From: Isurus oxyrinchus | Taxonomy: Eukaryota | DNA length: 64,000 bases | Reading direction: 5' to 3' | NCBI GenBank assembly: GCA_026770705.1 | Contig: JANJGN010000121.1 | Span: 186,001 to 250,000, forward strand | Shown: positions 27,068-59,039 of the stretch, in pieces | How positions within the stretch are numbered: the stretch's first letter is position 1 | How the letters are laid out: each line of letters begins with the position of its first letter | Notes under the pieces: model-generated | The model's database searches: none | Told to the model about the DNA's origin: nothing | Seen by the model: only the letters and a program-made list of their open reading frames with translations | Position numbers and translations under genes: made by a program

Positions 27068-27438
27068 TTGGACTGTCACAAGAGTGGAAAGGTGAAAAAC
27101 TCCACGAGAGGTGACAGCGCAGGAAGGTTCGTGTGTACAGATTCCATGTCATTACAGTTATCCATCGTGTCTGGAAAACCAACAACGAGGTGGAGTCTGG
27201 TTTAATAATGAGGAACAGATTCCCTGGGCTCCCACTGCCTTTCACTCCAAGGATCACAGTCACGAGTTACCACGGTTCCACCATCGGACCCGGCTGTCTG
27301 GAGACCTGAAAGATGGTGACTGTTCCCTGATTATAAACAACATCAGACGGGAAGATGCAGGACCTTATTTTTTCAGAATAGAATTTGACAATGGTCCGAG
27401 CTATAACTATTACCCTGTAACCCAGCTTCACGTTTCTG
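27068..27438 (+). pseudogene. Gene B V-set Ig exon with frameshift
   Basis: 371 nt versus 369 in gene A; extra bases in the A-run 27095-27099; remainder GSCVQIPCHYSYP...YFFRIE is open in the shifted frame. Confidence 0.9.
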
Positions 27439-28681: not shown

Positions 28682-28978
28682 ATTTCACAGATAAACCCAC
28701 GATATTCCCTGCTGAAATTATTGCAGGAAAGCGTGTGGATGTAAGCTGCACCTTCAACACAACGTGCAATGGAACAGCAGCACCTGTCTTAACCTGGGAC
28801 ACTCCCACTGACGTACCTGGATCAGTCTCAAACACTGTAACTCAGCATGGTGTCACTCTGACCTATACTTCTGTTCTGACCCTGATCCCATCACTCAAAC
28901 ACCACGGACACACACTCAGCTGCAGAGTGAGATATCCATCTGTTTCATCGGAGCGGACCCTCGTACTGACTGTGCTAT
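28682..28978 (+). CDS. Gene B C2-type Ig domain 2 exon
   Basis: ttag/gtaagt, 297 nt, almost identical to gene A exon 4. Confidence 0.9.
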
Positions 28979-29149
28979 GTAAGTACAAACACCCTTCAAT
29001 CTACATTAGCTGGAATAGTATCAAATGTGCACAGCAAGCTCCCACATACTGCACTTTGTTTATAAACAAACCATTGGTATTTAACTGGTAAAAAGTGAGC
29101 CCTGACAGGCAGTACATCCTTACTACTGACTCTCCGATAGTGCATCATG

Positions 29150-30890
29150 GACTCATAGACTCATAGACACTTACAGGACAGAAGGAGGCCATTTAGCCCA
29201 TCATGTCCATGCTGGTCAGCAACTCCCTCCCCAAGTGCATCACCTCACATTTTTCCAGGTTGAATTCCATTTGCGTCGTGATCATTTCCCCTTTATATAA
29301 GTCCAATTCATTTATATACACCACAAACAGCAAGTGCCCCAGCACTTTGCCCTGTGGAACCCCACTGGAAACAGACATCCAGTCACAGAAACATCCCTCC
29401 ACCATCACCCTCTGCTTCCTGCCTCAGCCAATATTGGATCCAACGTGCCACTTTGCCTTGGATCCCATGGGCTCTTACTTTCTTGGCCTCTCTGCCAAGA
29501 GGCACCTGATCAAAAGCCTTCCTCAGCCCATGTCGACCACATCAAAGGCATTACTCTCATCAACACTCCTGGTTACCTCCTCAAAAGATTTGATCAGGTT
29601 TGTCAAACATGACCTTCCCTTAACAAATCCATGCTGAATATCCCAGATTAATCCTTGTCTCTCCCAGTGCAGATTCATTCTGTCCTTCAGAATTCTTACT
29701 AGTAACTTCCCCACCACCGAGGTTAGACTGACTGGCCTGTAATTTCCTGATCTATCCCTTCCTCCCTTTTTTAATAATGGGACAACATTAGCCATCCTCC
29801 AGTCCTCTGGCACCTCACCTGTGGCCAGAGAGGATTTGAAAATTACTGCCAGGGCCCCTGATATCTCTTCCCTTTCCTCCCTCAACAGCTTTGGATTCAT
29901 CTCATCCAGGCTTGTGGATTTATCCACTTTTCAGGCCACTAAACCCACTAGTACCTCCTCTCTCTGTGTTAATTTCCTCTCATATTTCACAGTCCTCCAC
30001 CCTGATGTTATACCTGCATCATCCTTTTCCATTGTGAAGACTGATGCAAAGTATTCATTGAGGACTGTACCCACGTCTTCCAGGTCCACACACACATTAC
30101 CTCGATGGTCCCTAAGCGGCCCCACTCTTTCCCGAGTTATTCTCCGGCTCTTTACATATTTAAAAAACCCCTCTGGGTTTTGCTTTATTCTACACACCAG
30201 TGCTTTCTCATGCACTCTCTTATCTTTCCTAATGTCCTTTTTCAGTTCCCCTCTGCACTATTTGTACTCCTCTAGGGACTCTGCTGTATTGAGCCCTCAG
30301 TATCTGCCATAAGCTTCTCTTTTTTCTCAATCCTAACCTTTATGTTCCTTTTCTTCCAGGGTTCTCCAGACTTGGTCTCCCTCTTTGTCTTTACAGGAAG
30401 ATATCTGCTCTGTACTCTCGCTATTCCCTCCTTGAATGCCTCCCACTGCTCTGACACAGTTTTATCTGCAAATAGCTTCTCCCAGTCCACTTGGGCCCAA
30501 TCATATCTCATCTTAGTAAAATTAGCCTTTCCCCAGTTTAGAATTTTTATTCCCAGCACAAACTTATCCTTCTCCATAACTGTCCTAAATCCAATTGAGT
30601 TCCAGTCACTATCTCCCCTACTGATACGCTTTCCAACTTCCCCGGCGCTTTTCCATATATTAGGTCCAGAACTGTCCCCTCCCTTGTTGAGCTTTCTATG
30701 CACAGGCTAAAAATCTTCTCCTGGATGCAACTTCAGAATTTTTCTCCCTCCCTACCTTGCTCACTAAAGCTGTCCCAGTTAATATTTGGGTAGTTAAAAT
30801 CCCTGAGTATTACTGCTTTATTATTCTTACACATCTCTGAAATGTGATCACATGTTGGATTGTCCATCTCTCCCTGACTGTTTGTTGGTT
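29150..30890 (-). mobile_element. Degenerate, internally deleted CR1 LINE
   Basis: WGKANF, NEYFASVFT, VPEDWRMANVVPL, NYRPVSLTS, GVPQGKVLG fragments. Confidence 0.9.
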
Positions 30891-31900: not shown

Positions 31901-32034
31901 GAACTGAAGTGTCTGCCTGGATTACGGGCTATGTGGTGAAAGAACGTACATTGACATCACACCTTTCACATTCTCAGTGTCTTTCAAAGTGCTTCACAGT
32001 TAGTGTAAGTTAACTGATCTGTATTTGTTTTTAG

Positions 32035-32316
32035 ACACACCACAGAATCTCTCAATTAATTCTCTTGATATGATTAACGCTTCATCGATCAATATAATTG
32101 AGGGGAATTCTGCAGTGATAATCTGCTCTGTCGAGAGCTTCCCAGCTTCTAACCTGACGTGGCGACATCTTAATGTCCCAATGAACAGAACAAGTTCCAA
32201 CAATGAGCTGTGGTTGGTGATTCCTCACGTTACATCCAGGGATACTGGAGAATATCAGTGTGTGGCAGAGAATGAACATGGAGCAGTGGAGGGGTTCATA
32301 ACCATCACTGTGGAAT
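32035..32316 (+). CDS. Gene B Ig domain 3 exon
   Basis: tttag/gtgagt, 282 nt, phase 1-1; EGNSAVIICSVESFPASNLTW...DTGEYQCVAENEHG. Confidence 0.92.
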
Positions 32317-34021
32317 GTGAGTTACACAGACTTTAATATTTCTCTCATCTCCAAACACAAATATTCAGATGCTCTCCCACGCACACACACACAAGCACTC
32401 ACAAATGTACAGACCCAAAGTGCATGCACACACACAATCCCACACTCATGAGCACACAGAAAGACACACTCACACACTAACTCAGTAGTACACACTTCCC
32501 TGTGAGTTACCTGACCTCCCTCAGTACTGCACTGGAGAGTTCTCCTGGATTCTGGGATTTGTGTTCCCATTCATATTTATCGAAGAATATCCAAATTACA
32601 AAGTCTATTCCAGAAACTCACATGCACAAAGATTCCAACTGATACTCCCCACCTCTCCGTGTATCTCTCTCCTCCTTTAAGAAGCTTCCTAATCCCTAAC
32701 TCTTGCCTGTCCTAACTCCTCCTTATAATGCCCTGTGACAAATTTTTTGTGTATCTGAGAGAAAGGGAGACATAAGGAAGTTTAGGAAGGGATTTCCTGT
32801 TAGTGAAGAGCTTACTTCATTTTCTCACCTTTCCAGTGTTCAGTTTTGCCATCATGTCCAATGACCCTGTTTATAATGGGGGCAACATATGTAAACGTCA
32901 CACTGTCTTTACATCCTCCCACCAGTGATGGCACTGTGGTGCTTAACCTTGCACCTCCCAGCTTTTCAGCCAACTTCACTTCACAATTTGCAACACATGC
33001 TGTAAGTTCATCGAAATTAACTTATATATCAAATGGTAGATTTGATAATACAGTTTATTGAAAGATTCATCCGCGCTCTGGGAAGGGTTTACACTCTCCA
33101 GGAAGCAGGAATAGGCTGGATGTTGGGGAGTTCATCTTTTCCCAGAGAGTAGGGATCCTCGGGAATGTGCTGTCAGTGGGTGTGGTGGTTGCTGTCTCTC
33201 TGTTGCCTTCAAGAGGGATCTGGAGCGGTTACTAACTGGGGGAGAGATCATAGAAGCGGAGAATGATACAGCACAGGAGGAGGCCATTCAGCCCATTGTG
33301 CCTGTGCCAGGTCTTTCAATGTTCTGTCCAATCAGATCCACTAACCACCACTCCACTTTGCCCCCATCTTCCTCCTTCAAGTGTTAATCCAATTTCCCTT
33401 TTGAAAGTTCCTATTGAATCTGCTTCCACCGCCCTTTCAGGCAGCACCTTCCAGATCACAACAACTCGCTTTATCAAAACAAATTCTCCTCATCTCCCCC
33501 TCCGGTTCGTCAATCTGTGTCCCTCTGGTTACCAACCCTCCTGCCCCTTAAATACATCGATACTGTTCACCTCAACCACTCCCTGTGGGAGCGAGTTCCA
33601 CATTCTCCCCTCTCTCTGGGTAAAGATTGGAACTGTTTATTAAACGGGGTGAGTAAGTCCGTGAGGGAGTCCATCTCGATCCTGCCCGATTCGCACACGC
33701 GTCCGAGATGGATTTCCACGCTGCACTAAACGTTTCCAGAATTTTCTACAGCACAATCCTGTACACAGCGATGGAGAGAAACATTGGACAGGGAGTCCAA
33801 CAGCACAATGATCCATTCGCACCAATGTTCCACGCTAAGGGGAAAGTTCCGATTGTCCACTCTTAGAGTGTTTACAATGAAAACATTCATTCCACATTGA
33901 ATCCCAGTGGATGGGTCAATATTACAGCAAATGTTGCAGTGATATGAAGCTTGATTGTTCAGCCAGAGTGAGAGATTGAAAGCGGAGAGTCAGTGATGAT
34001 TTCTTTCTGTGTGTTCTCTAG

Positions 34022-35938: not shown

Positions 35939-37439
35939 TCTTCTCCGCCGATGCTGCCAGACCTGCTGAGTTTTCCCACGTATTTCTGTTTCTGTTTCTG
36001 TTTTGAATTTCCAGCATCCGCAGTTTTTTTGCTTTTAGTGCTGGGCAGTTCCTCAGCAAGGATTCGGGCCACAAAACATTGCGAGTGCTGTGGGTCTGCG
36101 CCACGATTTAGAGAGCTGTGCTTGGCACGCCTATTCTAGTCCCAGTCCAGTGTGGTGGGGACAGCCTGGCAGTCCAGGGTTGGTCGTGCCCAGCATGGTG
36201 TGCAGGACGTGGTCAGTCCCTCACACACGTCCATCCTGGGGGTGGGTGGCTTGATACTAGGCCGCAGGTGGCACAATCCCAGTCAGGGGAGGCATCTGCA
36301 GCCGGTCAGTGGGGAGCAGGTAATATAGAGGGTAGGGGTGGGGGTGGAAAAGAGGGGGGCCGGTGGTCTCTGTAAGTCACAGTACAATGGGCCTCTAGTT
36401 GGAGAGAGGTCAGGTCTACATGGGGCATTGGGATGTCAACATCAGACAGTCTAGGGAGGAGGACTGGGATGTCAACCCCCAACACAATAAGATCAAGGAT
36501 TAGAGAGGAAGGGAGGAGACTGATTGGAAGGAGGGGAATGTGCACATTATGCTCCTCCAGCACGATGGGAGGGACTGTGATGGTTACGGGGGTGGGGGGG
36601 GGGGTGAAGTGTGAGGGGATAGACGCTTACCTGGTGGTATTGCCTCAGCCCCACCCTTTTTCAAGCTGATCCAATGTCGCAGTTGAAGAATAAGCTACAA
36701 AACAAATTGGCAGGGGAGGTCTCCCAGGGCCTGTGGGAGACATCACCCACTGCATCTTCGGCCTGGTTGAAGGGGCACCCGAACAATTCCGGCTTTTCCA
36801 AATGATGAGGAAGACACAGCTGCACCCCGAGTCCCCTACTGGGGATCCAGAAGGTTGCAATAGCGCTGCGAGGGACTCATGGGCTCCACAGTGACTCCCT
36901 AATTAGCGACTGGAAGGTTTATGTTCATTTATCTTTATTATCCGTTCATATTGAGCAATGGAGCTCCTGATTTGTCACCTTTCTGTACCTCGTCCAATGC
37001 TTCTGTTATCAGGACTTCCACATCGATGTGAAAGAGCCATGATGATAGCAGACAGTCGCACAATGGGAATGGCACTAGGCCAGTGATCCAGAGGCCCAGG
37101 TGAATGCTTTGAAGGCACGGGTTCAAATCCCACCACGGCAGCTGGAGGAATTTCAATTCGATTAATCAATAAATTTAATTGATTGATACATTTTTTTCTT
37201 ATTCATTTCAGGGATGTTGGTGTCGCTGACTAGGCCAGTATTTGTTGCCCATCCCCATTTGCCTTTGAGAACATCTGGATATCTGAGTTAGGATCAGGAG
37301 TAGGTCACTCAGCCCCTCGAACCTGCTCCGCCATTCAGTAAGATCATGGCTGATCTGATTGTCACCTCAACCTCACATTCCTGCCTACCCCCAATGACCT
37401 TTCACCCCATTGTTAATCAAGAATCTATCTAGCTCTGTG

Positions 37440-39390
37440 GAAGGGGAGCCAATCAATCGGGCTGCTTTGTCCTGGATGGTGTCAAGCTTCTTGAGTGTTG
37501 TTGGAGCTGTGCTCATCCAGGCATGTGGAGAGTATTCCATCACACTCCTGACTTGTGCGTTGTAGATGGTGGACAGGATTTGGGGAGTCAGGAGGTGAGT
37601 TACTGTCTGCAGGGTTCCCAGCCTCTGACCTGCTCTTGCAGCCACAGTGTTTATATGGCTGGTCCAGTTCAGTTTCTGCTCAATGGTAACTCCCAGGATG
37701 TTGATATTGGGGGATTCATTGATGGTAATGCCATTGAATGCCAAGGGGCGATGGTTATGAATGGTCTGTGGGATACTCTGGTACAAAATTTCAACACTCG
37801 GACTCCAGATGCAATATTCAAGTGGTTCCTTTATTAGGCATGTGGGGAGCAAACGCTGGGCAGTACAGGTGCTTCTCCACCGAGGTTCAAATGAGCACAG
37901 TTTATATATTTTTTACTCTCAGTTACAACGTAATGGTATTAGTTAGACAAAGGCCACAGCACAATGATCCTCCGGTGGGCTGATAATTGTGTTCTTGTAC
38001 AGTAATTACAGGGCAGAGACTGGCTATTGTCCTTTTGAGACAGCAAAGAATCTATGTTTGTTCGATACAAAAGGTTTCCGGAGGCTGACTGGATGTGGTT
38101 CAAGGCCATCGGAGGGTGTGAAATAACCTTCCCCATTTCTTGATTGAGTCACCCTGTGTCCTTGTGTGTGTGTCTCCCATTTCCTCATTGCAAATTTACA
38201 GCTGAGCCCTTTGTACAGGTTTTTAGCTTTCACGTAAGGATGTGTACGCTTTGGCGCCCTAGCTGCTGGTCCTGGCTGGCTCTTTAAAATAAATCCAAAT
38301 TTTCTGCGCCTTCAGTTAGATTCTCTCTTGTTGGAGCTGGTCATTGCCTGGCACTTGTGTGGCATGAATGTTACTTGTCACCTGTCAGCCCAAGCCTGGA
38401 TGTTGTCCAGGTCTTGCTGCATTTGGACATAACTTGCTTCAGTATCTGAGGAGCCGTGAATGGTGCTGAACATTGTGCAAACATCAGCAAACATCCCCAC
38501 TTCTGACCTTATGATGGAAGGAAGGTCATTGATGAAGCAGCTGAAGATGGTTGAGCCTAGGACACTACCCTGAGTAACTCCTGGAGTGATGTCCTGGAAC
38601 TGAGATGATTGACCCCCAACAATCACAACCATCGTCCTTTGTGCTGGGTATGACTCCAAGCAGCAGAGAGTTTTCCCCCGATTCCCATTGACTCCAGTTT
38701 TGCTCGGGCTCCTTGATTTGCCACACTCAGTCAAATGCTGCCTTGATGTCAAGGGCAGTCACTCTCACCTCACCTCTGGAGTTCAGCTCATTTGTGCATG
38801 TTTGAACCAAGGCTGTAATGAGGGCAGGAGCTGAATGATCCTGGTGGAACACAAACTGAGCGTCAGTGAGCAGGTTCTTGCTAAGCAGGTGCTGCTTGCA
38901 AGCGCTGTTGATGACCCCTTCCATCACTTTAGTAATGATCAAGAATAGACTGCTGGGGAATTAGCTGGGTTGGATTTGTCCTGCTTTTTGTGTACAGAAC
39001 GTACCCCATAGCCGGGTAGTTGCCAGTGTTGCAGCTGTACTAGAAAATTCCAGAAAAGCTTGGCTAGGGGCGCAGCAAGTTCTGGAGCACAAGTCTTCAG
39101 TACTATTGCCGGAATAATGTCAGGGTCTGGAGCATTTGCAATATCCAGTGCCTTCAGCCCTTCCTTGATATCACGTGGAATTAATTGAATTGGCTAAAGA
39201 TTGGCATCTGTGATGCTGGGGACCTCAGGAGGAGGCCGAGATGGATCAGCCACTCAGCACTTCTGGCTGAAGGTTGTTGCGCATGCTTCAGTCTTGTCTT
39301 TTGCACCGATGTGCTGGGCTCCTCCATCATTGAGGATGGGGATTTTTGTGGAGACTCCTCCTCCAGTGAGTTGTTTAATTGTCCATGACT
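37440..39390 (-). mobile_element. Degenerate LINE (CR1/L2 group) reverse-transcriptase fragment
   Basis: ALDIKAAFD, GVTQGSVLG, MFADVC, KLNWTSHIN, VRSVMEY; interrupted by a solo LTR. Confidence 0.88.
37758..38314 (+). mobile_element. Solo LTR, 557 bp
   Basis: TGAA...TTCA termini, GTTA target-site duplication (37754-37757, 38315-38318), AATAAA at 38288. Confidence 0.85.
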
Positions 39391-41249
39391 GGATGTGACA
39401 TCTGGAATGCGAAGCTAGTCTCAGTAATGGTGACCATGAAACTAAGGCCAATTGTTGCAAAAACCCATCTGGGTCACTAATGCCCTTTGGGGAAGGAAAC
39501 CTGCCGTCCTTACCCATTCTGGCCTACGTGTGACTCCTGACCCACAGCAATGTGGTTGACTCTTAACTGGCCCCTGAAATGGCCGAGCAAGCTACTGAGT
39601 TATATCAAAACCCGCCACAGACCAGTCAAACCAGGTGAACTGCAGCACTTCGAAAAGGCAGCTCAGCACCCCCTTCTCCAGGGCTCAGTCAGGAACAGGT
39701 AACAAACGCTGTCCACATCCCGTGAAAGAATTTTGGTAAAAAGGTAACGTGTATCACCACCCACGGCCAGCGCCAACCCCCCCACCCCTACCTGATTGCA
39801 CCAGTTTCAGATTACACCAGGTCAATGAACGGATAGAAACCCAAACCAATGAGATGAGCACAGAGAAGGATCAAGCCAGAGAGAGTTGGTGGGAAGAATT
39901 GGGAAAGCAACAAAAAAGGCAGAGCGGACACTAACACTATAACAAAGTAAAGACCAGAGGAGGAAGGAAGCAAGTGCGAAGAGGAATTGAGAGTAGAGCT
40001 GGTAGGCTGCTTGTCGAAGCCAAGGACCCTCCATAGGTCACACCCACAGTGCTTTTGGGGAGGGAGTTACATGATTTTGACCCAGGATCATCAAGTGTTG
40101 AACTGGCAGAGCCTTTAAAGTAAAGGGACCTTCACTACCCGTGTCCCCCGCCCAACAAAGCTGTTGACATGCCGAGTCCACCTGTACAGGCAACCTCCAG
40201 ACAGTTGACTACAAAGGCCATTGCAGCTGCTGAATATGACTTCCAGTTTCAAAACCTTCATGAATACAAGGATGGGGGATTCAGCAGGAATATTCCTGCA
40301 CATCCTGTGGCAGATCCTGTAAATAAAAGGGACCTTCACTCACTCCTCAAAGCTGTTGACCTGCTGATTCACATCTACAGGCAACCTCCAAACAGTCGAC
40401 TAGAGAAGACAATGCAGCTGCTGAATGTGACTCCTAGCATCAAACCCTTCACTCTGGAAAGAAGGAATCCAGAGCAATGGGCCTCACTATGATACTTGAC
40501 AGAAACTGATTTTAAATCTCATCTCTAAGTATTATTTTTCCTTTGCTTACATTTTAATCCCTGCACCTGATGGCTTTATCGCTTCAACATAAATAACTTG
40601 CGGCAGGAGCCAGGTTCAAATGGAATGGACAAGGAGGCTCGGGGGGCCAAAAGGCCTACTCCTGCTTCTGTTTATTTATGTTGGTGTTGTTATGTAGTGG
40701 AACTAGAGAGGTTATAGCAGTTATGAGAACATTAAGCAAACAGCAGCAAGAATTGAACACCTACGTTGTGGTTTATGAAAAGGTTTTCAACCTGGTCAAC
40801 TGGTAAAATCTGTTGAAAGTGGGCTATCATGGCGTGTGCCCTTCGTGTGATATTTGTAACAACGTTCTCGATGTCGGAACAGCTTGCATTGAACAAAGCT
40901 GATCTTTACCCAGAACTTCAGAGGAAGGGGGGACAATTGTTCCCTGGTGTGGGGGGCATGGTGGGGGGGTAGGGTGAGGGAGAGACAAGTAGCCTGAAAT
41001 ACCAAGCCAGACACTTTGTGAAGACAAAAGTTGTTTATTCATTTTTTTTTTTTACAAAGCACAATATTTGCAATTAAAGTCCCGACAAGATAATGGTGAA
41101 TCATGAACACATTGTCGGGGTGAATCTGTGCCCGGGAGCATAAAGCAGCAAAATCAGGAGCCCGCTTTACATCTCTCTGAATTTTAACTATCATTAACCC
41201 CAGTAACATCCATTCAAATGACTTAGTCATAAGATTCCTCACACATTCA

Positions 41250-41585
41250 CTTGCACACTCACACACCTACACCCACACAGACACACTGACACACTCACTC
41301 ATTCACATTGACACACACTGACACAGTCACACACACCCACACAGACACACTGACACACTCACTCATTCACACTGACACGCACTGACACAGTCACACACTC
41401 ACACACCCACACCCACACAGACACACTGACACACTCACTCATTCACATTGACACGCACTGACACAGTCACACACACCCACACAGACACACTGACACACTC
41501 ACTCATTCACATTGACACACACATATTGACAGTCACACACACACACACACACACACACGCTCATAAAGACAGACACAAACACAGT
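41250..41585. repeat. CA-rich compound tandem repeat
   Basis: cacacagacacactgacacactcactcattcaca repeats and (ca)n. Confidence 0.9.
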
Positions 41586-41890
41586 CACGTGAGGTGAATA
41601 GTGTCGATGTATTTAAGTGGGAAGCTGGATAAACACACGAGGGAGAAATGAATAGAAGGATATGGTGATGGGGTGAGATGGAGAAGGGGTGGGCGGAGAC
41701 TCGTGTGGAGCAGAAACTCCAGCATGGAACAGATGGGCCGAATGGCTTCTTTCCCTGCTGTAAAACGCAGGTAAAGTTTCAGTTGGAATTAATGAACAGG
41801 GCCTGTGTGAAATAGATTGCTAAGCAGTAGATAAGGAGGGGAGAGGCTGTGGCATGGTGCAGGATGACCTTGCGTGAATGAGGCCAGGGT

Positions 41891-42007
41891 CTAATATCTA
41901 CAGCAGAGACCACAAGTCTCATTTGGTTCTCTCCAATTACAGCAGTTACAGCAGAATATGCAGAGCTGCTGTCTGCCCATTCTCTTCTGGCGCTGCAGCA
42001 AGGAGCC
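41891..42007 (-). CDS. HAMP: Hepcidin exon 3: furin site and mature peptide
   Basis: Acceptor cttttccag, phase 0; GSLLQRQKR-MGRQQLCIFCCNCCNWREPNETCGLCCRY*; 8-Cys hepcidin pattern CxxCCxCC...CGxCC. Confidence 0.95.
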   Translation of the reverse strand, partial: GSLLQRQKRMGRQQLCIFCCNCCNWREPNETCGLCCRY

Positions 42008-42079
42008 CTGGAAAAGCAGGAGTACAATAGGTGAGAACATTCCGGAAAGAAAGAAGGCATCATTTCAATCAGGCGCGTC

Positions 42080-42772
42080 ATTGGAAGGAGGATGGCGCAT
42101 TTCTATAGCGCCTTTCCCCTCCTCAGGATGGCCCAAAGTGTTCCACAGCTGAAGGAAGGACTTTTTCTGAAGTGAGCTCACCGCTGTAATGTAGGAAACG
42201 CAGCAGGCAATTCACGCACAGCAAGATCCCACAAACAGAAATGTGATAATGGCCCCGATTTTCAGTTTTTTACCAATGTCAGTTGAGGGATAAATGTTTG
42301 CCCCAGGAAAGCGGACATAACTCCACCCCATCCACCCCCCACCACCCCCTCCACACATACCCCCAACTCCTGACGCACTTCATCTAAATTGTGGCCATGG
42401 AATCCTCTACATCCATCTGAGAGGGCAGATGTTGTCTCAGTTTAACATCTCATCTGAAAGACAGCGCCTTCAACAGTGCAGCACCCCCTCAGTACTGACC
42501 CTCCGACAGTGCAGCACTCCCTCAGTACTGACCGTCTGACAATGCAGCACCCCCTCAGTACTGACCCTCCAACAGTGCAGCACTCCCTCAGTACTGGCCG
42601 TCTGACAATGCAGCACCCCCTCAGTACTGACCCTCCGACTGTGCAGTCCCCCGCCGGTACTGACCCTCTGACAGTGCAGCACTCCAAGACTGACCGTCTG
42701 ACAATGCAGCACCCCCTCAGTACTGACCCTCCGACTGTGCTGCCCCCCCGCCGGTACTGACCCTCCGACAGC
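42080..42772. mobile_element. Deu-domain-type SINE running into a 33-bp array (HAMP intron 2)
   Basis: gcacagcaagatcccacaaacag...tttaacatctcatctgaaagacag, then the array from about 42470. Confidence 0.75.
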
Positions 42773-43179
42773 TCGGTAATTTCTCAATTATGCCTGGTGG
42801 TCCTTTTAACTCAGAGCTGAGAGTCGCAGAGAATCGAGCACACATCCTGAACTGACACATTGCAAAATGTCCCAGCCCACATTACCGGAGCGTAAATCAG
42901 AGAGAAGTCTAACACTGAGTCACATATGGAGATATTAGGGATAGGTGACCAAAAGCTTGGTCAAAGATGTCAGTTTTTAAGGAACGTCTTAAAGGAGAGA
43001 GAGAGAGAAAGAGAGAGAGGCAGAGAGGTTAAGGGAGGGTATTCCGGAGCTCAGGGCCCCAGGCAGCTGAAGGCACGGCCACCAATGGTGGAGCGATGGG
43101 AATCAGGGGGACCCGGGAGATGCAGTAATGTCAGAGATTTTGGAGGAACATCGGGACCGGAGGAGGTGTTCTCCTGCTC

Positions 43180-43605
43180 CATATCTCTCTCTCTCTTCCT
43201 GTCATCCACTCCTCCTCTCCCTGTCTCTCTCTCTCCTACTCTTCCGCTCAATTGCCCTCTCTCCCAATCTTTCTCTCCTCTCTCCCTTTTCCTGTCTCTC
43301 TCCCTCTCTCTCCCCTGTCTCATTCTCCCACTCTGTATCTCTCCCTCTCTCTCACACTATTTTTGTACCTTTCGCTCACTCTGTAACTCTCCCTTTCCTG
43401 TTAATTTCTCTCTCTTGGACAATCTCTCTTCCCTTTTCACTTTCCCTCACTCTGCATCTCTTCTTTAATTTCTCCCTCTGTCACTCTCTCCCACCTATGT
43501 TCTTTCCCTTTCACCCCTCCCCGTCCCACTCTGTGTCTCTCTCTTCCAATCCCTCCCTCCCCCATTCCATCCCTCTCTCCGACTCTCGACTCCCAGCCTC
43601 TCTTT
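43180..43605. repeat. CT-rich low-complexity tract
   Basis: Polypyrimidine composition. Confidence 0.85.
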
Positions 43606-43870
43606 AACCCACTCCCAGGCTGGATCAGTCTCCCTCTCACTATTCCCGGCGTGGGTTACATTTAAAATTCCTGTGGGGATATGTTCACTTCCTTGGAATT
43701 GCCTCTTCCCAGCTTTGCAAAAAAAGCGGGGGGGGGGGGCTCGATTTCAAACATGCCTCCTGAGTATAACCGAGACAGACTGCCACTGAAATCAGCTTGA
43801 AATCAGAAAACTTTCTGTGGAAGAAACGAGCAGGGAGAAACCTTAAAATAAGGAATGAATTTCCACCTAC

Positions 43871-43927
43871 CGTGTCCGGGGAATCCACAGATTTCTCAAT
43901 CGTCGAAGAACCTAAAGCAGTGTCAAC
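43871..43927 (-). CDS. HAMP: Hepcidin exon 2: propeptide VDTALGSSTIEKSVDSPDT
   Basis: ttctttttgcag/gtaggt, 57 nt, open only in phase 0, in frame with exon 3. Confidence 0.85.
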
Positions 43928-44024
43928 CTGCAAAAAGAAAGAATTTATCAGGGAGAAAGTGAGAGGAGGATTGAGGGAGAGGGAGAGAGAGAGAGAGAGG
44001 TACAGGAGAGAGAGGGGGAGGAGG

Positions 44025-44630
44025 ACAGACTTGCATTTCTCTAACGCCTTTCACCACATCCCAAAGCATTTCACAGCCACTGAAGGATGTTTTTGAAGTG
44101 CACTCACACTGTAGGAAATGTGGCAGCTGATTTGTGCACAGCAAGATCCCACAAATAGCAATGTGATCATGGCCTAGATCATCTGTTTTTGGTGATGTTT
44201 GGTGAGGGATAAATATTGGTCCCAGGACACCGGGGAGAACACCCCCTGCTCTTCCTCCAAATAGTGGCTGTGGGATCTTTCACACCCGCCCGAGAGGGCA
44301 GACGGGGGACTCGGTTTAATGTCTCATTCAACATTGTTGTGCTCCCTCAGTACTAACCCTTTGACACTGCAGCACTCCCTCAGTACTAACCCTTCGATAG
44401 TGCTGCACTCCCTCAGTACTGACCCTCCGACAGTGCAACACTTCCACAGTACTGACCCTGTAACAATGCAGCACTTCCTCAGTACTGACCTCCGACAGTA
44501 TAGCACTCACTCAGTACTGTCCCTCCAATAGTGCAATACTTCCACACTACTGACCCTCTGACAGTGCAGCACTCCCTCAGCACGGAGTGTTGACCGACGT
44601 TATGGGACTGAATTCCCTGGAGTGAGACTC
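44025..44630. mobile_element. Deu-domain-type SINE with internal 33-bp array (HAMP intron 1)
   Basis: Same family as 42080; array 44340-44580. Confidence 0.75.
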
Positions 44631-44654
44631 AGACCAGAGATTTAGGTAGGGTTG

Positions 44655-45580
44655 TTCCGGCTGGAGGAGGTTACAGAGATAGGGAGGGTTGTAGAGGCTG
44701 TAGGAGGTAACAGAGATAGGGAGGATTCTAGAGGCTGTAGGAGGTTACAGAGATAGGGAGGGTTGTAGGGGCTGTAGGAGGTTACAGAGATAGGGAGGTG
44801 AGTAGGGGCTGTAGGAGGTTAAAGAGATGGGGGGGTTGTGGGGGCTGTAGGAGGTTACAGAGGTAGGGAGGGTTGTAGAGGCTGGAGGAGGTTACCAAAA
44901 TAGATACTGTTGTAGGGGCCACAGTAGGTTACAGAGAAAGGGAGAGTTATAGTGTGGAGAGGACGTTATAGAGTTCATGAGCATTGTAGGGGCTGGAGGA
45001 GGTTACAGTGATTCTGAGGGTCGTGGGGCCTGGAGGAGGTTACAGTGATTCTGAGGGTCGTGGGGCCTGGAGGAGGTTACAGAGATAGGGAGGGTTGTAG
45101 GGTCTAGAGGAGGTTACAGTGATCATGAGTGTTGTGGGGCCTGGGGGAGGTTACAGAGATAGGTAGGGTTGTAGGGGCTGGAGGAGGTTACAGAGATAGG
45201 GAGGTTTATAGGGGCTGGAGGAGGTTACAGAGATAGGGAGGGTTGTAGGGGCTGGAGGAGGTTACGGAGATAGGGAGTGTTGTAGGGGCTGGAGGAGGTA
45301 ACAGATATAGGGACAGTTGTAGGGGCTGGAGGAAGTTACAGAGATAGGGAGGGTTGTAGGGGCTGGAGGAGGTTACAGATATAGGGAGGGTTGTAGCGGC
45401 TGGAGAAGGTTACAGAGATAGGGAGGGGTGTAGGAGCTGGAGGAGGTTACAGAGATAGGGAGGGTTGTAAGGCCTGGTGGAGGTTACAGAGATAGGGAGG
45501 GTTGTAGGGGCTGGAGGAGTTTACAGAGATAGGGAGGGTTGTACGGGCTGGAGGAGGTTACAGAGATAGGGAGTGGCTGA
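44655..45580 (+). repeat. 37-bp G-rich minisatellite in HAMP intron 1
   Basis: Tandem ggggctggaggaggttacagagatagggagggttgta. Confidence 0.95.
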
Positions 45581-45775
45581 GGAGGGATTGAAAACAAGAA
45601 TGAGAATTTCAGGGGAAATGACAGAAGGAAATGATGTTAAATTCATAGAGGGCGACAATATTAAAGGCACGAACATAATAATATCAAACTGCGGAAGTGA
45701 CCAGTCTATCTGGGTGGTGGACGTAGAGTCATGTGCAAGAAACACCTCACCCAGAGGGACATCTCTTAGCTTAAC

Positions 45776-45867
45776 CTCGACAAGGAGAAGAAGTGACTCA
45801 GCTGCAGGGAGAGCAGCAAAGTCAGAGTGAACAAGACAAGTCGCCATTTCATCTGGGAGCTTCCCAT
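45776..45867 (-). CDS. HAMP: Hepcidin exon 1 coding part: signal peptide MGSSQMKWRLVLFTLTLLLSLQLSH...
   Basis: Hydrophobic leader about 70 bp downstream of a TATA box; donor AG|gttaag gives 92 nt, one short of phase 0. Confidence 0.75.
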
Positions 45868-45937
45868 CTCTGCCTGTCTCTTCTGATCTTCTGGCTCTGC
45901 TTTGATGCTTTGGTTTGTAACTAGAGGAGCTTCCTGC

Positions 45938-45944
45938 TCTTATA
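45938..45944 (-). promoter_or_regulatory. HAMP TATA box (TATAAGA)
   Basis: About 70 bp upstream of the ATG. Confidence 0.65.
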
Positions 45945-46076
45945 CCTGAAACACTTGAAGGGGACAGCCGGGGGTGGGTTGCTGTGTGGTATCACACCCA
46001 TTTCTGGATATTGCAGTGTCGATGTTCCCTGTCCCACTGGCCTGGGACCAGCAGTAAGGTCACTGGGACATTGACT

Positions 46077-46088
46077 GTCTGGCGCCGA
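46077..46088 (-). promoter_or_regulatory. BMP/SMAD response element in the HAMP promoter
   Basis: TCGGCGCCAGAC: GGCGCC core (46081-46086) plus abutting AGAC Smad-binding element. Confidence 0.65.
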
Positions 46089-46317
46089 GAACTATCAGTC
46101 CCTCCGCAACGCCCTTCACCTTGTGCAAATATGTGTTCATATTGACGCAACACAACATAGCAAAAACATAGGGGCTGGTTCTTATGTCGGCAAATCAGGT
46201 GAACCGCACGCCCCCTAACCCCTTACTCCTCTCATTGCTACACTTACTATTTTACAAATTGTGTGCGTTGCTTTTATTTTGGACAAGGGGCCTCGAGGGG
46301 GAACTGATTTACATTTT

Positions 46318-46612
46318 GTAACCTCCTCCAGCCCCTACAACACTCCTTATCTCTGTAACCTCCTCCAGCCCCTGTAACCCTCCCTATCTCTGTAACCTCC
46401 TCCAGCCCCTACAACACTCCTTATCTCTGTAACCTCCTCCAGCCCCTACAACCCTCCCTATCTCTGTAACCTCCTCCAGCCCCTGTAACCCTCCCTATCT
46501 CTGTAACCTCCTCCAGCCCCTACAACACTCCTTATCTCTGTAACCTCCTCCAGCCCCTACAACCCTCCCTATCTCTGTAACCTCCTCCAGCCCCTGTAAC
46601 CCTCCCCATCTC
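46318..46612 (-). repeat. 37-bp minisatellite, inverted relative to 44655-45580
   Basis: Tandem tgtaacctcctccagcccctacaaccctccctatctc. Confidence 0.95.
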
Positions 46613-46997
46613 TTGAAGGGTTCTCAAAATTTCCAACTGTCAAGGAACCCTGGGTTGGTGAGCGTGACCCCTGACCTCTCCTAGTGCAATTTAGTTAGGG
46701 ATGGGGGGTGGGACAAGGGTAAGGGCATTAGTAGCGTGATTCTCCCTCGTTATGCCGTGTGTTCCCCATTCTTAACTCAGTGTACTTTGTAAGTCTGTAT
46801 AATCTCAGTGTCATCCTAATGTTAGAAGTTCATTTGTGACTTCAGTAAACTCAGTTTTTGTCTTGCACCAAAACCAGTTGTCTGCTGCACTTTGTGACAA
46901 GCCCCGAATAAGTCCAAGGTCTAGAACCCAGGGAGTGGGAGCGATTCAGACGGCTCAGAAGTCGCAGGTGAAGCTGACACACACCACCACACCCTAC

Positions 46998-47600: not shown

Positions 47601-48733
47601 TGCTTCAATTCTTCAAACTCATTCCGAGATACACTCTCATATTCCCCCAGCAACTCAGCAACTCCTCCAGTGAAACATTTCAGAGCAGCTGAGCTTGGTT
47701 TTCTGGAACCAGTCTCGGCCCAGAAGACTAGGGCCCTCACCTGTCGCTATGATCACTGGAAGCTGGGCTGTCTGCTGCCTGTAGGACACAGGTACTGGGA
47801 TGAGGTCCTTTCCCTGTATGGATTCTCCAGTGTGTGTCTTCAGCTGATCCATTGTTTGCTCTAAATTCAGCGTCTGGGTTCCTTCATTTAGCTGTTTAAA
47901 TGTGGGCTCTTCCACCACTGTGTCTGAGGCTCCCGTATCTGCCCCATTACTAGTGGCTGCCCATTCACTTGGGTTGTGATGGTTATAGGTTCAGTTTTTA
48001 CCACTGTGACATTGGACAGGGAATAGACATCGGTATCAGCAGCTTCAGGCTCTGTGATATTATTCACTTCCATCATGTTGGTGCACTGCCTGATGGGCTG
48101 TCTCGATTTCACCCTGCATTGCTTTATTACCCGCCCCTTTCTTGTGGCAGTGATGGCATTCTGCCCCCTCGAACCTGCAGGTGTCCGGTACGTGCTCACT
48201 CCCCCCACATCGAGAACAGGCCAACTTCGGAGTTGCTGCTGAAATACTCCCACAAAGCCTTGTAGTTTCTGGAGCGGCAGAGACTGTCTCTCGCTTGGCG
48301 GCTGTCTCTCTCTCTCTCTCTCTCTCTCTCCAGTTTGAGCCTCACGCCCGGTGGTTGGTTCCTGTCCCAGCTGAGGACTGGCGCCATGTTGTACATCCTG
48401 TAAATCCCGCCAGTCTCTTCCAGCACTTTCCATGCCTGGCGCTATTTCCATGGCGCGCTTCAAATCGATGTCGGCTTCTGCGAGTAAACGGCTCTGAATG
48501 GCGTTGGGGTGAACGACACAAACCAATCGGCCCCGCAACATGTCATTGAGTGTGTCTCCGAGGTCCCAGTGCTCAGTCACCTGCTTCCACTTCACTGTAT
48601 AGGTTGCGATGGACTCTCCCGGGGCCCTTACTCTGGAGTTAAACTTAAACCTTTTCATTATTACCCACGGCTTCAGCTGAAAACACATCTTCATGAGGTC
48701 GACTAATTGGTGAAAAGATTTAGAATTGGGTGC
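47600..48733 (-). mobile_element. Ty3/Gypsy gag-protease remnant
   Basis: KRFKFNSRVRAPGES...MLRGRLVC, GPSLLGRDW; same family as 23486-24715. Confidence 0.85.
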
Positions 48734-49021
48734 AATACACGTCACTGTCTTCAGCTCTGAGACTGTCAGTCCTCACCGAACAATTCTTCCCTTCCAAGTC
48801 GCCGATTATTTTAGCACGTCCCACGAATGTGGCCATCCCATAATTGGGATCTTTGGTGTATGTGATGGTATATTTCCATCTATACCAATATATATACCAA
48901 GCTCCGTGCAGTGCTGTGTAAGAGTGGGAAGGAAAGTCAAAGCTACACGGAATAACCACACAAGAGCTGCTGATGGCCCTCCGAGGCAGCGCCTTCATAG
49001 ACCATCCCTCTGACGTCACTC
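48733..49021 (-). pseudogene. Siglec-like gene C V-set exon, truncated
   Basis: Acceptor ctttcag, phase 1; GVTSEGWSM...SCVVIPCSFDFP...GRAKIIGDLEGKNCSVRTDSLRAEDSDVY, then Gypsy sequence and TAA at 48720. Confidence 0.85.
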
Positions 49022-49089
49022 CTGAAAGGCAACAAGGGAGGGGACTGAACATCAAAAAGCAGAATATTACTTCAATGGAGAGAGTCTAC

Positions 49090-51468: not shown

Positions 51469-51598
51469 NNNNNNNNNNNNNNNNNNNNNNNNNNNNNNNN
51501 NNNNNNNNNNNNNNNNNNNNNNNNNNNNNNNNNNNNNNNNNNNNNNNNNNNNNNNNNNNNNNNNNNNNNNNNNNNNNNNNNNNNNNNNNNNNNNNNNN
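51469..51598. other. Assembly gap
   Basis: Run of N. Confidence 1.
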
Positions 51599-54799: not shown

Positions 54800-57015
54800 A
54801 ATTAAAAAGTTAGAGTCCAATAAAAATTTAAAGGAATATATGATTAATACAATTGCTTGTCTTTGAGGCGTAGATTTTTGACATTTGCAGCTGTTCAAGG
54901 TTAATTGGTTTCCTGTGGCATCCTTGTAGTGATCTGATTCAGATTTGCACTTTGTTGGAGATGCTCTGTTAGCTTCAGAAAGAGAGAGAGAGAGAGAGAG
55001 AATTTCTGCTCTTTTCCAGCAGTGTATTTGAGTGACTGCCATCTTTCTTTTTCCTCCTACTTTCTCTTATATCTGCTTGACAGAACCTGTTGTTAAACTC
55101 CTGTCTGTATATTCCCAAAGGGAATTCGATCAGCATGTCTTGCATTCATTGTCGCAGACCAAGTAATCCCTTTTTTGACTTTTGCATCTCTGAAACATTT
55201 GATGCATTTCAAGATATAAATCAACAGGAGATGGAGGCATTTCATCCTCCACAAGAGGTTTTGAATGATTGATGAATATCTGCATGGTGAGCAGTTCCCA
55301 TTACCTTGATAGACCTACAGTGATCAGAGTCCAGCGCTTTGCATTTTTAATGGAGCCCCTCTTTCAAGTGGACCCTGACACACCTCAGTGAGAACTTTCA
55401 TGCAACATGTCTGTAGTGCAATTCATTTGAAGCTTTCCAGAGAAGTGATCAAGTTTGCAGTATCAGCAATCAGGTGACTCGTGACAGCCATTTTTGATCA
55501 GTGCCTAATCTAGTACTTTTGAAAAACAGGTCTCCTTTAAACAGTTCAATACATTTTTGGCACGTTGTTTCAGTTAAAGGAAGCTCTGTTATGACATAAC
55601 AGATGGTAAATGCTGAGCTGTTCAAATCCTGGAGGGAAACTTGAAACAACTGTCACAACTAATTTCCAACTTGTATGTTTTGAGATGTGGGCTTTGAATT
55701 CAGTAGTAATGAGATTAAGATATTTAAGAGGTAATTATGGTTGGTTGAAAAAAAGGGTTTAAAATATATTTTCCCCCAAATACAATTTCCAAAACAAGTC
55801 TCTTTGATTGTTAAGAATGAACCAATTAAACCATGTTTGGTGGAGTCAAAGAAAGAGTAAGTTTATTAGTTACCTAACTGGAGGAAAAATAATTAAAATG
55901 GGACAAAACACACACACTAACGCACAGACNNNNNNNNNNNNNNNNNNNNNNNNNNNNNNNNNNNNNNNNNNNNNNNNNNNNNNNNNNNNNNNNNNNNNNN
56001 NNNNNNNNNNNNNNNNNNNNNNNNNNNNNNNNNNNNNNNNNNNNNNNNNNNNNNNNNNNNNNNNNNNNNNNNNNNNNNNNNNNNNNNNNNNNNNNNNNNN
56101 NNNNNNNNNNNNNNNNNNNNNNNNNNNNNNNNNNNNNNNNNNNNNNNNNNNNNNNNNNNNNNNNNNNNNNNNNNNNNNNNNNNNNNNNNNNNNNNNNNNN
56201 NNNNNNNNNNNNNNNNNNNNNNNNNNNNAATTATAGAGTCCAATAAAAAATTAAAAGAGTCGTTTGCTTGTACTGCAGCGTAGGCTGTGAAGTTTGAAGC
56301 TGTTTTAAATTAGTTGGTTTTCTGTAGATTCCTGTATTTTATCTGGCTCAGACTTGCACATTGTTGAAGACACTCTGTTAACTTCAGACAGAGAGAGAGA
56401 GAGTGGGAGAAATCATTTCTGCTCTTTTCCAGCAGTGTTTGTGGAAGACTGCCATATTTCTTTTTCCCCTCCTTTCTCTGAAATCTGCTTGGCAGAACCA
56501 TTTGTTAAACTCCTGTCTGTATATCCCTGAAGTCAATTCAATCAGCATGTTTTACATTCATTGTTATAGACCAAATATTCCCATTTTTTTATCTTTGCAT
56601 CTCTGAAACCTTTGATGCATTTCAAGATATAAATCAACAGGAGATGGGGGTATTGTATCCTCCACAGGGGGTTTTGAATGGCTGATGATTATCCGCTTGG
56701 TGAGCAGTTCCCACTGTTTTGATTGAACTACAGCTGATCAAAGTCCAGCACTTTACATTTTAATGCCTTCCTTTTAAGATTGTCCCTGTTTGAAGTGAAC
56801 CCTGACACACCCCAGGTGTGAACTTCCATGCAACAGGTCTGCAGTGCAATTCATTTAACCTTTCCAGAGAAGTGATCAACTTCACAGTATCAGCAATCAG
56901 GTGACTTGTGTCAGCCATTTTTGATCTGTGTACAATCTTGTATTTCTTTGAAAAACAGATCACTTTTAGACAGTTCAATACGTCTTTGGTCTGTTAGTTA
57001 AGTTGTAGGAAGCTC
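54800..57015. repeat. Diverged tandem duplication 54800-55590 / 56229-57015
   Basis: Shared agagtccaataaaaa, tttgatgcatttcaagatataaatcaacaggagatgg and cagtatcagcaatcaggtgact, with many substitutions. Confidence 0.9.
55930..56228. other. Assembly gap
   Basis: Run of N. Confidence 1.
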
Positions 57016-57134: not shown

Positions 57135-57380
57135 NNNNNNNNNNNNNNNNNNNNNNNNNNNNNNNNNNNNNNNNNNNNNNNNNNNNNNNNNNNNNNNNNN
57201 NNNNNNNNNNNNNNNNNNNNNNNNNNNNNNNNNNNNNNNNNNNNNNNNNNNNNNNNNNNNNNNNNNNNNNNNNNNNNNNNNNNNNNNNNNNNNNNNNNNN
57301 NNNNNNNNNNNNNNNNNNNNNNNNNNNNNNNNNNNNNNNNNNNNNNNNNNNNNNNNNNNNNNNNNNNNNNNNNNNNNNNN
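57135..57380. other. Assembly gap
   Basis: Run of N. Confidence 1.
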
Positions 57381-58074: not shown

Positions 58075-58620
58075 TCCTAACATTTGATTGGATCACGTCC
58101 GATCTGTATCTTAACCCCATCCACCCGCCTCGGTTCCGTGACCCTTAACCCCCGACCCAACAACAATCTCCCAATCTCAGTTTTGAAATTTACAATTGAC
58201 CCCTCCCAGTCTCGACAGCTTTTTCTGGGGGAGAGAGTTCCAGATTTCCACCCCCCCTTTGTGTGAAGAAGTGCTTCCTGACATCACTCCCTGAACGGCC
58301 TGGCTCCAATTTTAATGTTCTGCCCCCTTGTTCTGGACCCCCTCCTCACCTTACCCCCATCTGAGGAAATAGTTTCACTCCATTGCCCGTAACAAAGCCT
58401 TTAATCATCTTAAACCCCTCGATTAGATCACCCCTTAATCTTCGAGACTCGAGGGAACACAAGCCTGGTCTGTGCAACCTGTCCTCAGGATTTAACCCTT
58501 TCAGACCCGGGATCGTTCTGGTGACTCTGCACAGCACCCCCTCCAAGGACAATATATCCTCCCTGAGGTGCGGTGTTCTGGACTGAACCCAGTGACTCCA
58601 GATTGGGTGTGAGGGGACCT
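58075..58620 (-). mobile_element. CR1 LINE 3' fragment
   Basis: RRLRGDLIEGFKMIKG. Confidence 0.82.
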
Positions 58621-59039
58621 TCATAAAACTGTGCCAGACACTTCAAAAATCTCTTCAATTCAACCTTGTAAACGCAGTAGGAAAAATCCCAGGGGGCCAT
58701 TGTATCTTAGCAACATCGTAAACTTGGCCAAAAGAATCCCCCTGGTCACTCCTGAGTGTTACTAATATTGTAAACACAAATTATACAGCTCCTCCAGTCT
58801 CTGAGAAGCAAAGGTAGGACACTAGAGCACCACCACTGGTAGGAGGCTGTAATTACAGTGTGACATGTTTACATGGGAATGTTCCATTACCAATGACACA
58901 GGAACTTAAATAATCAGAAGGACATGTGATAACAGGAAGTGGTGCCTTGGAGAATGGAATTATTCACTAGAGTACGTATTTAATTTGATAAAAATGTACA
59001 GAAATGTCAGGGCATTTTAATTGCTTCTTTTTTGTATTC

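Follow-up and report, generated by a model that had tools for sequence, protein, structure and literature searches.

Published work on hepcidin, the master iron hormone of vertebrates, is almost non-existent for cartilaginous fishes. This article examines a hepcidin-family gene located on the minus strand of a 64-kb stretch of shark DNA (Isurus oxyrinchus, contig JANJGN010000121.1, positions 186,001 to 250,000), hereafter called the window, to whose first letter all coordinates refer. The best known member of the family, human hepcidin, is encoded by a three-exon gene and has a convertase site. Mature human hepcidin-25 (PDB 1M4F, 2KEF, 3H0T, 6WBV) comprises 25 residues and has the same cysteine frame as the shark peptide, including an identical CIFCC core. 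It differs from that peptide by its DTHFP start, by a His3 belonging to an amino-terminal Cu/Ni (ATCUN) site and by a loop of only 4 residues (HRSK).

Teleosts possess several types of hepcidins, and those of the Hamp2 type show a pattern of fast evolution of the mature peptide. The effect of hepcidin on ferroportin is carried by its first nine residues, the disulfide-rich part facing outward (10.1101/2020.03.16.993006). In sea bass, the QSHL-type Hamp1 (QSHLSL) regulates ferroportin whereas Hamp2 does not; more generally, the Hamp2-type hepcidins of teleosts lack a QSHL-type start and act in defence (PMC5665920). No paper describing a chondrichthyan hepcidin sequence was found in the literature searched, in which the hepcidin of cartilaginous fishes appears in a single plasma-proteome mention (PMC9207270).

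A three-exon gene of the hepcidin family

The locus corresponds to a hepcidin-family gene with three exons, in a lamniform-like shark (Table 1). The three minus-strand exons proposed in an earlier note on this DNA, and with them the three-exon layout of hepcidin genes, are present with the letters first quoted, as verified by re-reading the sequence, and both of their joints are supported by transcript contigs. Exon 1, whose 5' end was placed near 45915 from the position of the TATA box, ends at 45776 with a strong donor (AG/GTTAAG). Exon 2 has good splice sites on both sides (acceptor TTTTTGCAG, donor GTAGGT), and exon 3 is preceded by the acceptor TTTTCCAG. Exon 3 does contain, as had been stated, RQKR followed by a peptide with eight cysteines: a convertase site of the form R-x-(K/R)-R, predicted from the sequence, directly precedes the mature peptide. 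The gene is a real one, and the term 'hidden' formerly applied to it is justified only insofar as an open reading frame (ORF) track cannot show small spliced exons. The exons were searched singly, and the frame across the junctions was read from 48-nt junction neighbourhoods. According to a six-frame pattern scan and to tblastn with five shark hepcidin-locus proteins, this is the only hepcidin locus of the window, from which three runs of N (51469-51598, 55930-56228 and 57135-57380) were left out.

Membership of the hepcidin family is borne out both by a profile search and by solved structures. A hidden Markov model search with exon 3, the check that the earlier note had put forward, found a match to the Pfam Hepcidin profile (PF06446) from position 23/24 to position 52 of its 53 positions, with a score of 31.1-31.5 bits (E 2e-7) for a cutoff of 27; the scores of annotated shark hepcidins, 44.8-48.6 bits, exceed the 31.5 bits reached here. 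The three solved structures matched by the exon 3 product are all hepcidins (human 1M4F and 1M4E, bass 1S6W). The core CIFCC...CG.CC is identical, and the alignments to the human and bass structures need a gap of 4 or 3 residues that lies exactly at the Cys5-Cys6 loop. The cysteine pattern C-x2-CC-x-CC-xn-C-x2-CC is found near the C-terminus with n = 8, as in canonical shark forms, and all eight cysteines are column-aligned with those of three shark hepcidins and of human and bass hepcidin. Besides these eight cysteines, the columns invariant with respect to shark hepcidins include the dibasic site, the Met at +1, the Asn that follows CC-x-CC and the Gly that follows Cys6.

Broader searches yielded little. 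A word-index search with the exon 3 frame in a collection of ~5.8 billion protein clusters, covering proteins of 31-99 amino acids, gave no candidate sharing three 5-residue words. HMMER searches with exon 3 against 1.84 billion representatives returned three translated-repeat artefacts only, the 38-residue query being too short for distant hepcidins; such false matches stem from the Cys-rich translations of the 33-bp tandem arrays described below. The best look-alike in the ESM Atlas (score 0.76) is a plant hypothetical protein and is uninformative. The AlphaFold2 model, which is of low confidence (mean predicted local distance difference test score 62), comprises a single hairpin (E15-20, E32-37), the tip of which is formed by the long loop, and Foldseek found no match in the PDB for this small, low-confidence model.

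Shark relatives and divergence of the mature peptide

A search with the exon 1 frame retrieved an 'uncharacterized protein LOC144671611' from the basking shark Cetorhinus maximus, and its isoform X2, used in turn as a query, retrieved catshark hepcidins. This isoform (XP_078389754.1, 88 amino acids) has the mature peptide MSHLSVCVYCCGCCNKKGTKKTCGYCCKL. The mature peptide MSHLSICVYCCGCCNRKGSKKTCGYCCKL is carried by the 'hepcidin-2-like' protein XP_038670190.1 of Scyliorhinus canicula and by the 'hepcidin-1' of S. torazame (XP_072325013.1 / UniProt A0A401NWS0), whereas another 'hepcidin-2-like' protein of S. canicula, XP_038669797.1, is of a short-loop type, with the mature peptide MTNHSICVYCCGCCNRENCGFCCKH. 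The nearest proteins thus come from the basking shark (Lamniformes) and catsharks, in agreement with the cartilaginous fish that had been supposed from the letters.

Like the basking shark protein XP_078389754.1, the product of the window gene has a three-part build, belongs to the same length class and has a dibasic site followed by Met. Both mature peptides comprise 29 residues, with identical cysteine positions and an 8-residue loop ending in Thr-Cys. Furthermore, the two precursors are identical at 29 of 30 positions of the signal peptide, 16 of 19 positions of the exon 2 part and 7 of 9 positions of the end of the propeptide. Unlike the window peptide, however, that of the basking shark carries His3 and Leu4, a basic loop, a net charge of +5 and no sequon, and its Pfam score reaches 44.8 bits. 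The long-loop hepcidins of catsharks share with the window gene the 8-residue loop, the cysteine frame and the layout of the gene product but start with MSHLSI and have a basic loop, and their prepro part (signal peptide and propeptide) is identical to that of the window gene at 35 of 58 positions.

The loop, NWREPNET in the window, reads NKKGTKKT in Cetorhinus and NRKGSKKT in two Scyliorhinus species. Its length, in which the earlier note had seen the main oddity of the peptide, is therefore typical of the lineage, being the same in XP_078389754.1, XP_038670190.1 and XP_072325013.1, and these public hepcidins rule it out as a novelty. To judge from the sequences compared, the 8-residue loop is an old and conserved state of the main shark hepcidin in Lamniformes and Carcharhiniformes. 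As it coexists in these sharks with an x-S-H-L N-terminus, the long loop is evidently compatible with the hormone type, in agreement with the finding, cited above, that hepcidin acts on ferroportin through its first nine residues.

The short-loop protein XP_038669797.1 is a second type of shark hepcidin, with an altered N-terminus (MTNHS) and its own N-x-S sequon (N-H-S). It provides a precedent for two types of hepcidins in elasmobranchs, and indicates that sequons are not unique to the gene studied here. It differs from the window gene by its 4-residue loop (NREN) and its 25-residue peptide and does not belong to the same derived type. Its His is found at position 4 instead of 3.

The divergence of the window gene is concentrated in the mature peptide. 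Between the window and the basking shark, the prepro part is identical at 52 of 58 positions, versus only 4 of the 21 non-Cys positions of the mature peptide (Fisher p = 5e-9), so that the strong divergence of this peptide, as earlier claimed, holds. Between the canonical long-loop hepcidins of basking shark and catshark, 38 of 59 prepro positions and as many as 26 of 29 mature positions are identical. Therefore, the canonical peptide is strongly constrained, as a hormone with a fixed receptor should be, and the window peptide is not under the same constraint; a mature part conserved above the prepro part, which characterizes the canonical iron-hormone type, is not found in the window gene.

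The replacements affect both the N-terminus and the loop. The mature peptide starts with MGRQQL, versus MSHLS(V/I) in the basking shark and catsharks: relative to the canonical shark form, His3 is replaced by Arg, which leaves no ATCUN site, and Leu4 by Gln, so that position 4 is no longer hydrophobic. The basic loop K/R-K-G-S/T-K-K-T has become W-R-E-P-N-E-T, which is acidic to neutral, and the net charge has fallen from +5 in the basking shark to +1. The NET sequon (41923-41915) arose because Thr22 is conserved and Lys20 has been replaced by Asn. This sequon, the two Glu and the lack of both His3 and a hydrophobic residue 4 are all as the earlier note had described them. Glycosylation of Asn20, which can be predicted from the sequon, is possible but uncertain; when a sequon lies so near the C-terminal end of a short precursor, its use depends on the post-translocational STT3B route. 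In contrast with these changes, the hydrophobic core L6-C7-I8-F9 (I6-C7-I8-F9 in human hepcidin) is kept and the scaffold, i.e. cysteine frame, cleavage site and length, is retained, the change in the mature part being recent.

Indeed, the identity of 52 of 58 prepro positions to the canonical basking shark hepcidin points to a recent derivative and not to an old lineage. The proposal of an early-branching hepcidin is abandoned in view of this 90% identity, whereas that of a neofunctionalised gene is plausible, given the pattern of divergence. Globally, the sequence comparisons suggest that the gene probably derives by recent divergence from the normal long-loop hepcidin of sharks, as a paralogue (or allele lineage) of a defence ('Hamp2-like') type.

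The mature peptide of this gene was not found in the ~5.8-billion-cluster protein collection, and no paper of the literature searched contains the strings CIFCCNCC, FCCNCCNW or LCIFCCNCC. It had been envisaged that both loop and N-terminus might already be described for the lineage: this is true of the long loop, which is public, but the derived N-terminus and loop chemistry are absent from the public proteins and literature searched.

Transcripts and the reading frame of the window copy

Exon 3 and its flank occur in eight public runs of two organisms. Four of these runs were compared with positions 41000-46200, namely X1 and X2 (organism A, one sample) and X5 and X6 (organism B). X1 and X2, in which 0.88-0.92 of the 31-mers sampled from exon 3 with its flank are present, behave as RNA. 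The joint 42006/42007 to 43870/43871, with ends CT..AC on the plus strand, occurs in 9 contigs of X1, and exons 1 and 2 are also joined in contigs (43927 to 45775, with one ambiguous letter). In both X1 and X2, contig cover is high through 41000-41870 and extends into the bin 45872-46045; in X2, a loose end of 20 T before 41015 corresponds to a poly(A) tail, 20-25 nt beyond AATAAA. The contig depth of X1 and X2 amounts to 1.6e5-5e5 in exon bins versus ~1e3 in intron bins but, as it is a poor measure of expression, it is taken only to mean that the spliced form far exceeds the unspliced one. The gene is apparently very strongly transcribed. X5 and X6 correspond to low-depth DNA of a relative, with a 673-nt contig over exon 3 that shows 24 letter differences and a 22-nt insertion. 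A CA-rich compound microsatellite (41254-41583), with higher-order units of 64-140 bp, lies within the transcribed 3' untranslated region (UTR), and depth over it is inflated by repeat matches.

The window copy itself has a frame defect. From the ATG to the donor, exon 1 provides 92 nt (phase 2), whereas the 57-nt exon 2 reads in phase 0 only. Exon 2, its length and its phase are thus as first described, but not its in-frame join to exon 1 as the window is written: canonical splicing would lead to ...SHFFSLSRLTLL followed by a stop, after ...SLSRLTLL, and the window copy as written would yield a truncated product. Transcript contigs carry one G more at the exon 1/2 junction (TCGAG-G-GTTGAC), giving ...FFSLSR-VDTALG... 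in frame; in transcripts, exon 2 is therefore 58 nt long or exon 1 93 nt long. The missing G sits either at the donor (AGG/GT) or at the acceptor (CAG/GG), and the residue of the split codon is a Lys in the basking shark and catshark proteins. The alternative, an intron of non-canonical type (TT-AG or GT-CA), is much less likely.

The transcript contigs display several forms of the junctions, every listed variant retaining the in-frame length. The joint between exons 2 and 3 with ACG>ATG (Thr>Met, position 43872) is present in X1 and X2 and is found in the majority of the junction contigs. Other variants include GTT>GGT (Val>Gly) at 43926 and, in the split Arg codon, AGG>CGG (R>R) or TGG (R>W) at 45777. 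More than two junction forms coexist in one sample, which points to expression from several copies, to a sample that was pooled or, given the extreme depth, to read errors. In addition, at ~12 intron positions, the letter of the window is absent from the RNA-like contigs, which show another one only, i.e. about 1 difference per 100 nt. These intron differences and the ATG majority indicate that the window does not represent the exact haplotype or copy from which the abundant transcript originates.

The window copy is either a flawed (dead or minor) duplicate or allele, or the victim of an assembly slip. The most serious rival explanation is that it is a non-functional duplicate, i.e. a young pseudogene or a null allele, the transcripts originating from intact sister copies that are ~99% identical. 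The frame shift and early stop caused by GT-AG splicing, the additional G in all listed junction contigs, the intron positions with a non-window letter only and the number of junction variants in one sample all favour this explanation. However, assemblies commonly err by dropping a base in a GG or GGG run, the RNA sample may come from another individual, and read errors may account for the minor junction variants, which represent 0.04-0.3% of depth. Furthermore, contigs drop rare variants, so that the window's own form could go unseen, and the TATA box, ATG, splice sites, all cysteines, stop codon and poly(A) signal are intact. Globally, the odds seem to be somewhat against a non-functional copy, though not by enough to make it an improbable one.

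Function of the mature peptide

The exon 1 signal peptide would send a precursor of ~88 residues into the secretory path, and a furin-type convertase would cut the propeptide after RQKR. An alternative cut at RMGR may give a 26-residue form starting with Gln. The secreted 29-residue peptide is predicted to fold as a four-disulfide beta-hairpin. While the signal and propeptide parts are nearly unchanged, almost every non-Cys residue of the mature peptide has been replaced, and the x-S-H-L start common to the hormones of sharks, teleosts (Hamp1) and, as DTHF, mammals has been lost. The peptide is probably not a ferroportin-binding iron hormone; more likely, like the Hamp2-type hepcidins of teleosts, it would be secreted for defence or have some other extracellular role.

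A defence-type or otherwise non-hormonal role is our best guess, and one that we hold to be slightly favoured, based on the loss of His3 and Leu4, the lost constraint on the mature peptide and the Hamp1/Hamp2 precedent of teleosts. Indeed, the gene shows what is expected of a defence type, i.e. a fast-changing mature peptide without the hormone N-terminus, borne on a conserved prepro part. Like teleost Hamp2-type peptides (e.g. that of sea bass, HSSPGGCRFCCNCCPNMSGCGVCCRF), it has no QSHL-type start and a low net charge. It differs from them by the length of the loop (8 residues versus 5 in teleosts) and by its independent origin. The comparisons do not support orthology to teleost hamp2, the prepro part being 90% identical to that of the canonical shark gene; this identity rather indicates that the type arose inside sharks, and the resemblance to Hamp2 would be convergent.

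Several observations weigh against this reading of the gene. The net charge of +1 is low for a membrane-active peptide. The core L6-C7-I8-F9 resembles the human I6-C7-I8-F9, so that some binding to ferroportin is conceivable, and the GGCGCC-AGAC motif of the proximal promoter would suit a control by iron and BMP, as for a hormone. Moreover, a canonical MSHLS-type gene of the same animal was not seen in the search, which covered the 64-kb window only. Lastly, the records of X1 and X2 do not list them as RNA, and expression is poorly measured by contig depth.

Some of these observations would fit another explanation, in which the gene is a genuine orthologue of HAMP and encodes the working iron hormone of the animal, with control over ferroportin in spite of the change in its N-terminus. 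The conserved core, the low positive charge of the peptide, the GGCGCCAGAC motif ~215 bp upstream of the ATG (GGCGCC occurring only 3 times in the window), the very high contig depth of the exons and the position of the gene next to Siglec/MAG-type V-set exons, similar to that of HAMP by MAG and CD22 in mammals, all go in this direction. However, Arg and Gln have taken the place of His3 and of the hydrophobic residue at position 4, and related sharks keep a near-invariant MSHLS(I/V)CVYCC... peptide, with 26 of 29 positions identical across two orders, versus 4 of 21 non-Cys positions here on a 90% identical prepro part. In addition, the teleost type devoid of a QSHL start does not regulate ferroportin (PMC5665920). 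The hormone explanation is thus considered unlikely.

As for a chance Cys-rich ORF in repeat-rich DNA, an idea to which the abundance of repeats with Cys-rich translations (e.g. the CCTVRGSVLRE arrays) and the repeat junk returned by HMMER from 1.84 billion representatives might lend some appeal, it is practically certain to be wrong and was ruled out, since the PF06446 match exceeds the curated cutoff, the contigs are spliced with canonical introns and a poly(A) end, the exons match annotated shark hepcidins one by one (29/30, 16/19, 7/9 and all cysteines) and only one such exon exists in 64 kb.

Genomic environment of the gene

The hepcidin gene is flanked by Siglec/MAG-type V-set exons at 27096-27518 (+), 48723-49085 (-) and 5976-6446 (-). 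Siglec-5, MAG, Siglec-7/8, CD33 and sialoadhesin are the best solved-structure matches of the immunoglobulin (Ig) exons of the window. In mammals, the neighbourhood is USF2-HAMP-MAG/CD22, which the Siglec/MAG flanks observed here resemble. The Siglec block located at 27-29 kb recurs near-identically, in inverted orientation, at 4.8-6.5 kb, which indicates a segmental duplication of the region; the neighbours would be the same in any duplicated block.

Two other isoforms of the basking shark locus LOC144671611 also find counterparts in the window. The alternative last exon of isoform X3 matches 38730-38840 (-) at 89%, within a retroelement reverse-transcriptase fragment downstream of the hepcidin gene, and that of isoform X1 matches 6480-6644 (+) at 84%, in a stretch beside a Siglec exon. 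These isoforms look like read-through or mis-spliced models rather than real proteins. Their matches at 84-89% indicate that the window is a similar but non-identical block, i.e. a paralogous copy or the corresponding region of a closely related species.

The promoter carries the motif GGCGCCAGAC (Table 1), which resembles the BMP-RE1 of mammalian HAMP. The GGCGCC included in this motif is found 3 times in the 64-kb window versus 1.6 expected, in CpG-poor DNA (CpG observed/expected ratio 0.23). Two C/EBP-like motifs, TTGCACAA and TTGCGTCA, known as motifs only, lie just upstream of GGCGCCAGAC, at 46121-46128 (-) and 46143-46150 (-).

The region is rich in repeats. An array of 25 copies of a 37-bp unit (44643-45573) occupies a large part of intron 1 and is found again upstream of the promoter (46317-46613). 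Arrays of a 33-bp unit, with ...CCTVRGSVLRE... in translation, are found in intron 2 (42473-42771) and intron 1 (44342-44580), and a block of ~8.8 kb of 33-bp arrays extends over 10170-19012. Reverse-transcriptase fragments of long interspersed nuclear element (LINE) type, with stops and frameshifts, at 1471-2967 (-), 29196-30706 (-), 37388-39414 (-) and 58349-60165 (-), are ordinary decayed retroelements.

Table 1. Features of the hepcidin-family gene and its surroundings in the 64-kb window
Feature	Position	Strand	Basis and remarks
BMP-responsive-element-like motif GGCGCCAGAC	46086-46077	-	GC-rich Smad1/5 site and AGAC Smad box; ~215 bp upstream of ATG; motif only
TATA box TATAAGAG	45944-45937	-	Sequence; 70 nt upstream of ATG
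Exon 1, 5' UTR and coding	45915-45776	-	Sequence; joined to exon 2 in contigs
Exon 1, coding part	45867-45776	-	ATG at 45867; signal peptide MGSSQMKWRLVLFTLTLLLSLQLSHFFSLS and 2 nt of a split Arg codon
Intron 1	45775-43928	-	Donor GTTAAG, acceptor TTTTTGCAG; holds tandem arrays; contig joint 43927 to 45775
Exon 2, propeptide VDTALGSSTIEKSVDSPDT	43927-43871	-	57 nt as written
Intron 2	43870-42008	-	Canonical GT..AG; carries repeat arrays
Exon 3, coding part	42007-41891	-	GSLLQRQKR, then MGRQQLCIFCCNCCNWREPNETCGLCCRY; stop TAG 41893-41891
RQKR proprotein-convertase (furin-type) site, predicted	41992-41981	-	Sequence; aligned with REKR and RQRR of shark relatives
RMGR minimal convertase site	41983-41972	-	Sequence; overlaps RQKR
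Mature peptide MGRQQLCIFCCNCCNWREPNETCGLCCRY, predicted	41980-41894	-	29 amino acids, 8 Cys, no His; net charge (K/R minus D/E) +1
Cys5-Cys6 loop NWREPNET	41938-41915	-	Alignments; 8 residues; NET sequon 41923-41915
3' UTR	41890-41015	-	~875 nt; contig cover, poly(A)-type end; AATAAA signal 41039-41034
Siglec/MAG-type V-set and C2-set Ig exons	27096-27518, 28630-29088, 32004-32333	+	Solved-structure matches
Siglec/MAG-type V-set and C2-set Ig exons	5976-6446, 4868-5248, 48723-49085	-	Solved-structure matches

Significance for hepcidin evolution in sharks

An x-S-H-L N-terminus associated with an 8-residue loop is the conserved state of shark hepcidin. In at least one lamniform-like shark, there is also a strongly transcribed derivative whose mature peptide has been nearly wholly replaced on an unchanged precursor scaffold, which parallels the Hamp1/Hamp2 split of teleosts with an independent origin. 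Annotation can miss such genes, as illustrated by the relative from the basking shark, which is named merely 'uncharacterized protein'.

A more ambitious scenario can be sketched, which we consider doubtful as a whole. Sharks might have independently evolved a second class of hepcidins, the canonical long-loop gene having been duplicated, perhaps often, within the Siglec cluster. Positive selection would then have rewritten the mature peptide into a near-neutral, probably N-glycosylated form without the metal-binding N-terminus, which would be encoded by one of the most abundant transcripts of the tissue and whose target would not be ferroportin. If this were true, a glycosylated hepcidin would be without precedent. 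The value of the gene lies in its product as a candidate host-defence peptide and in the natural experiment that it may offer on the hepcidin residues needed for the interaction with ferroportin.

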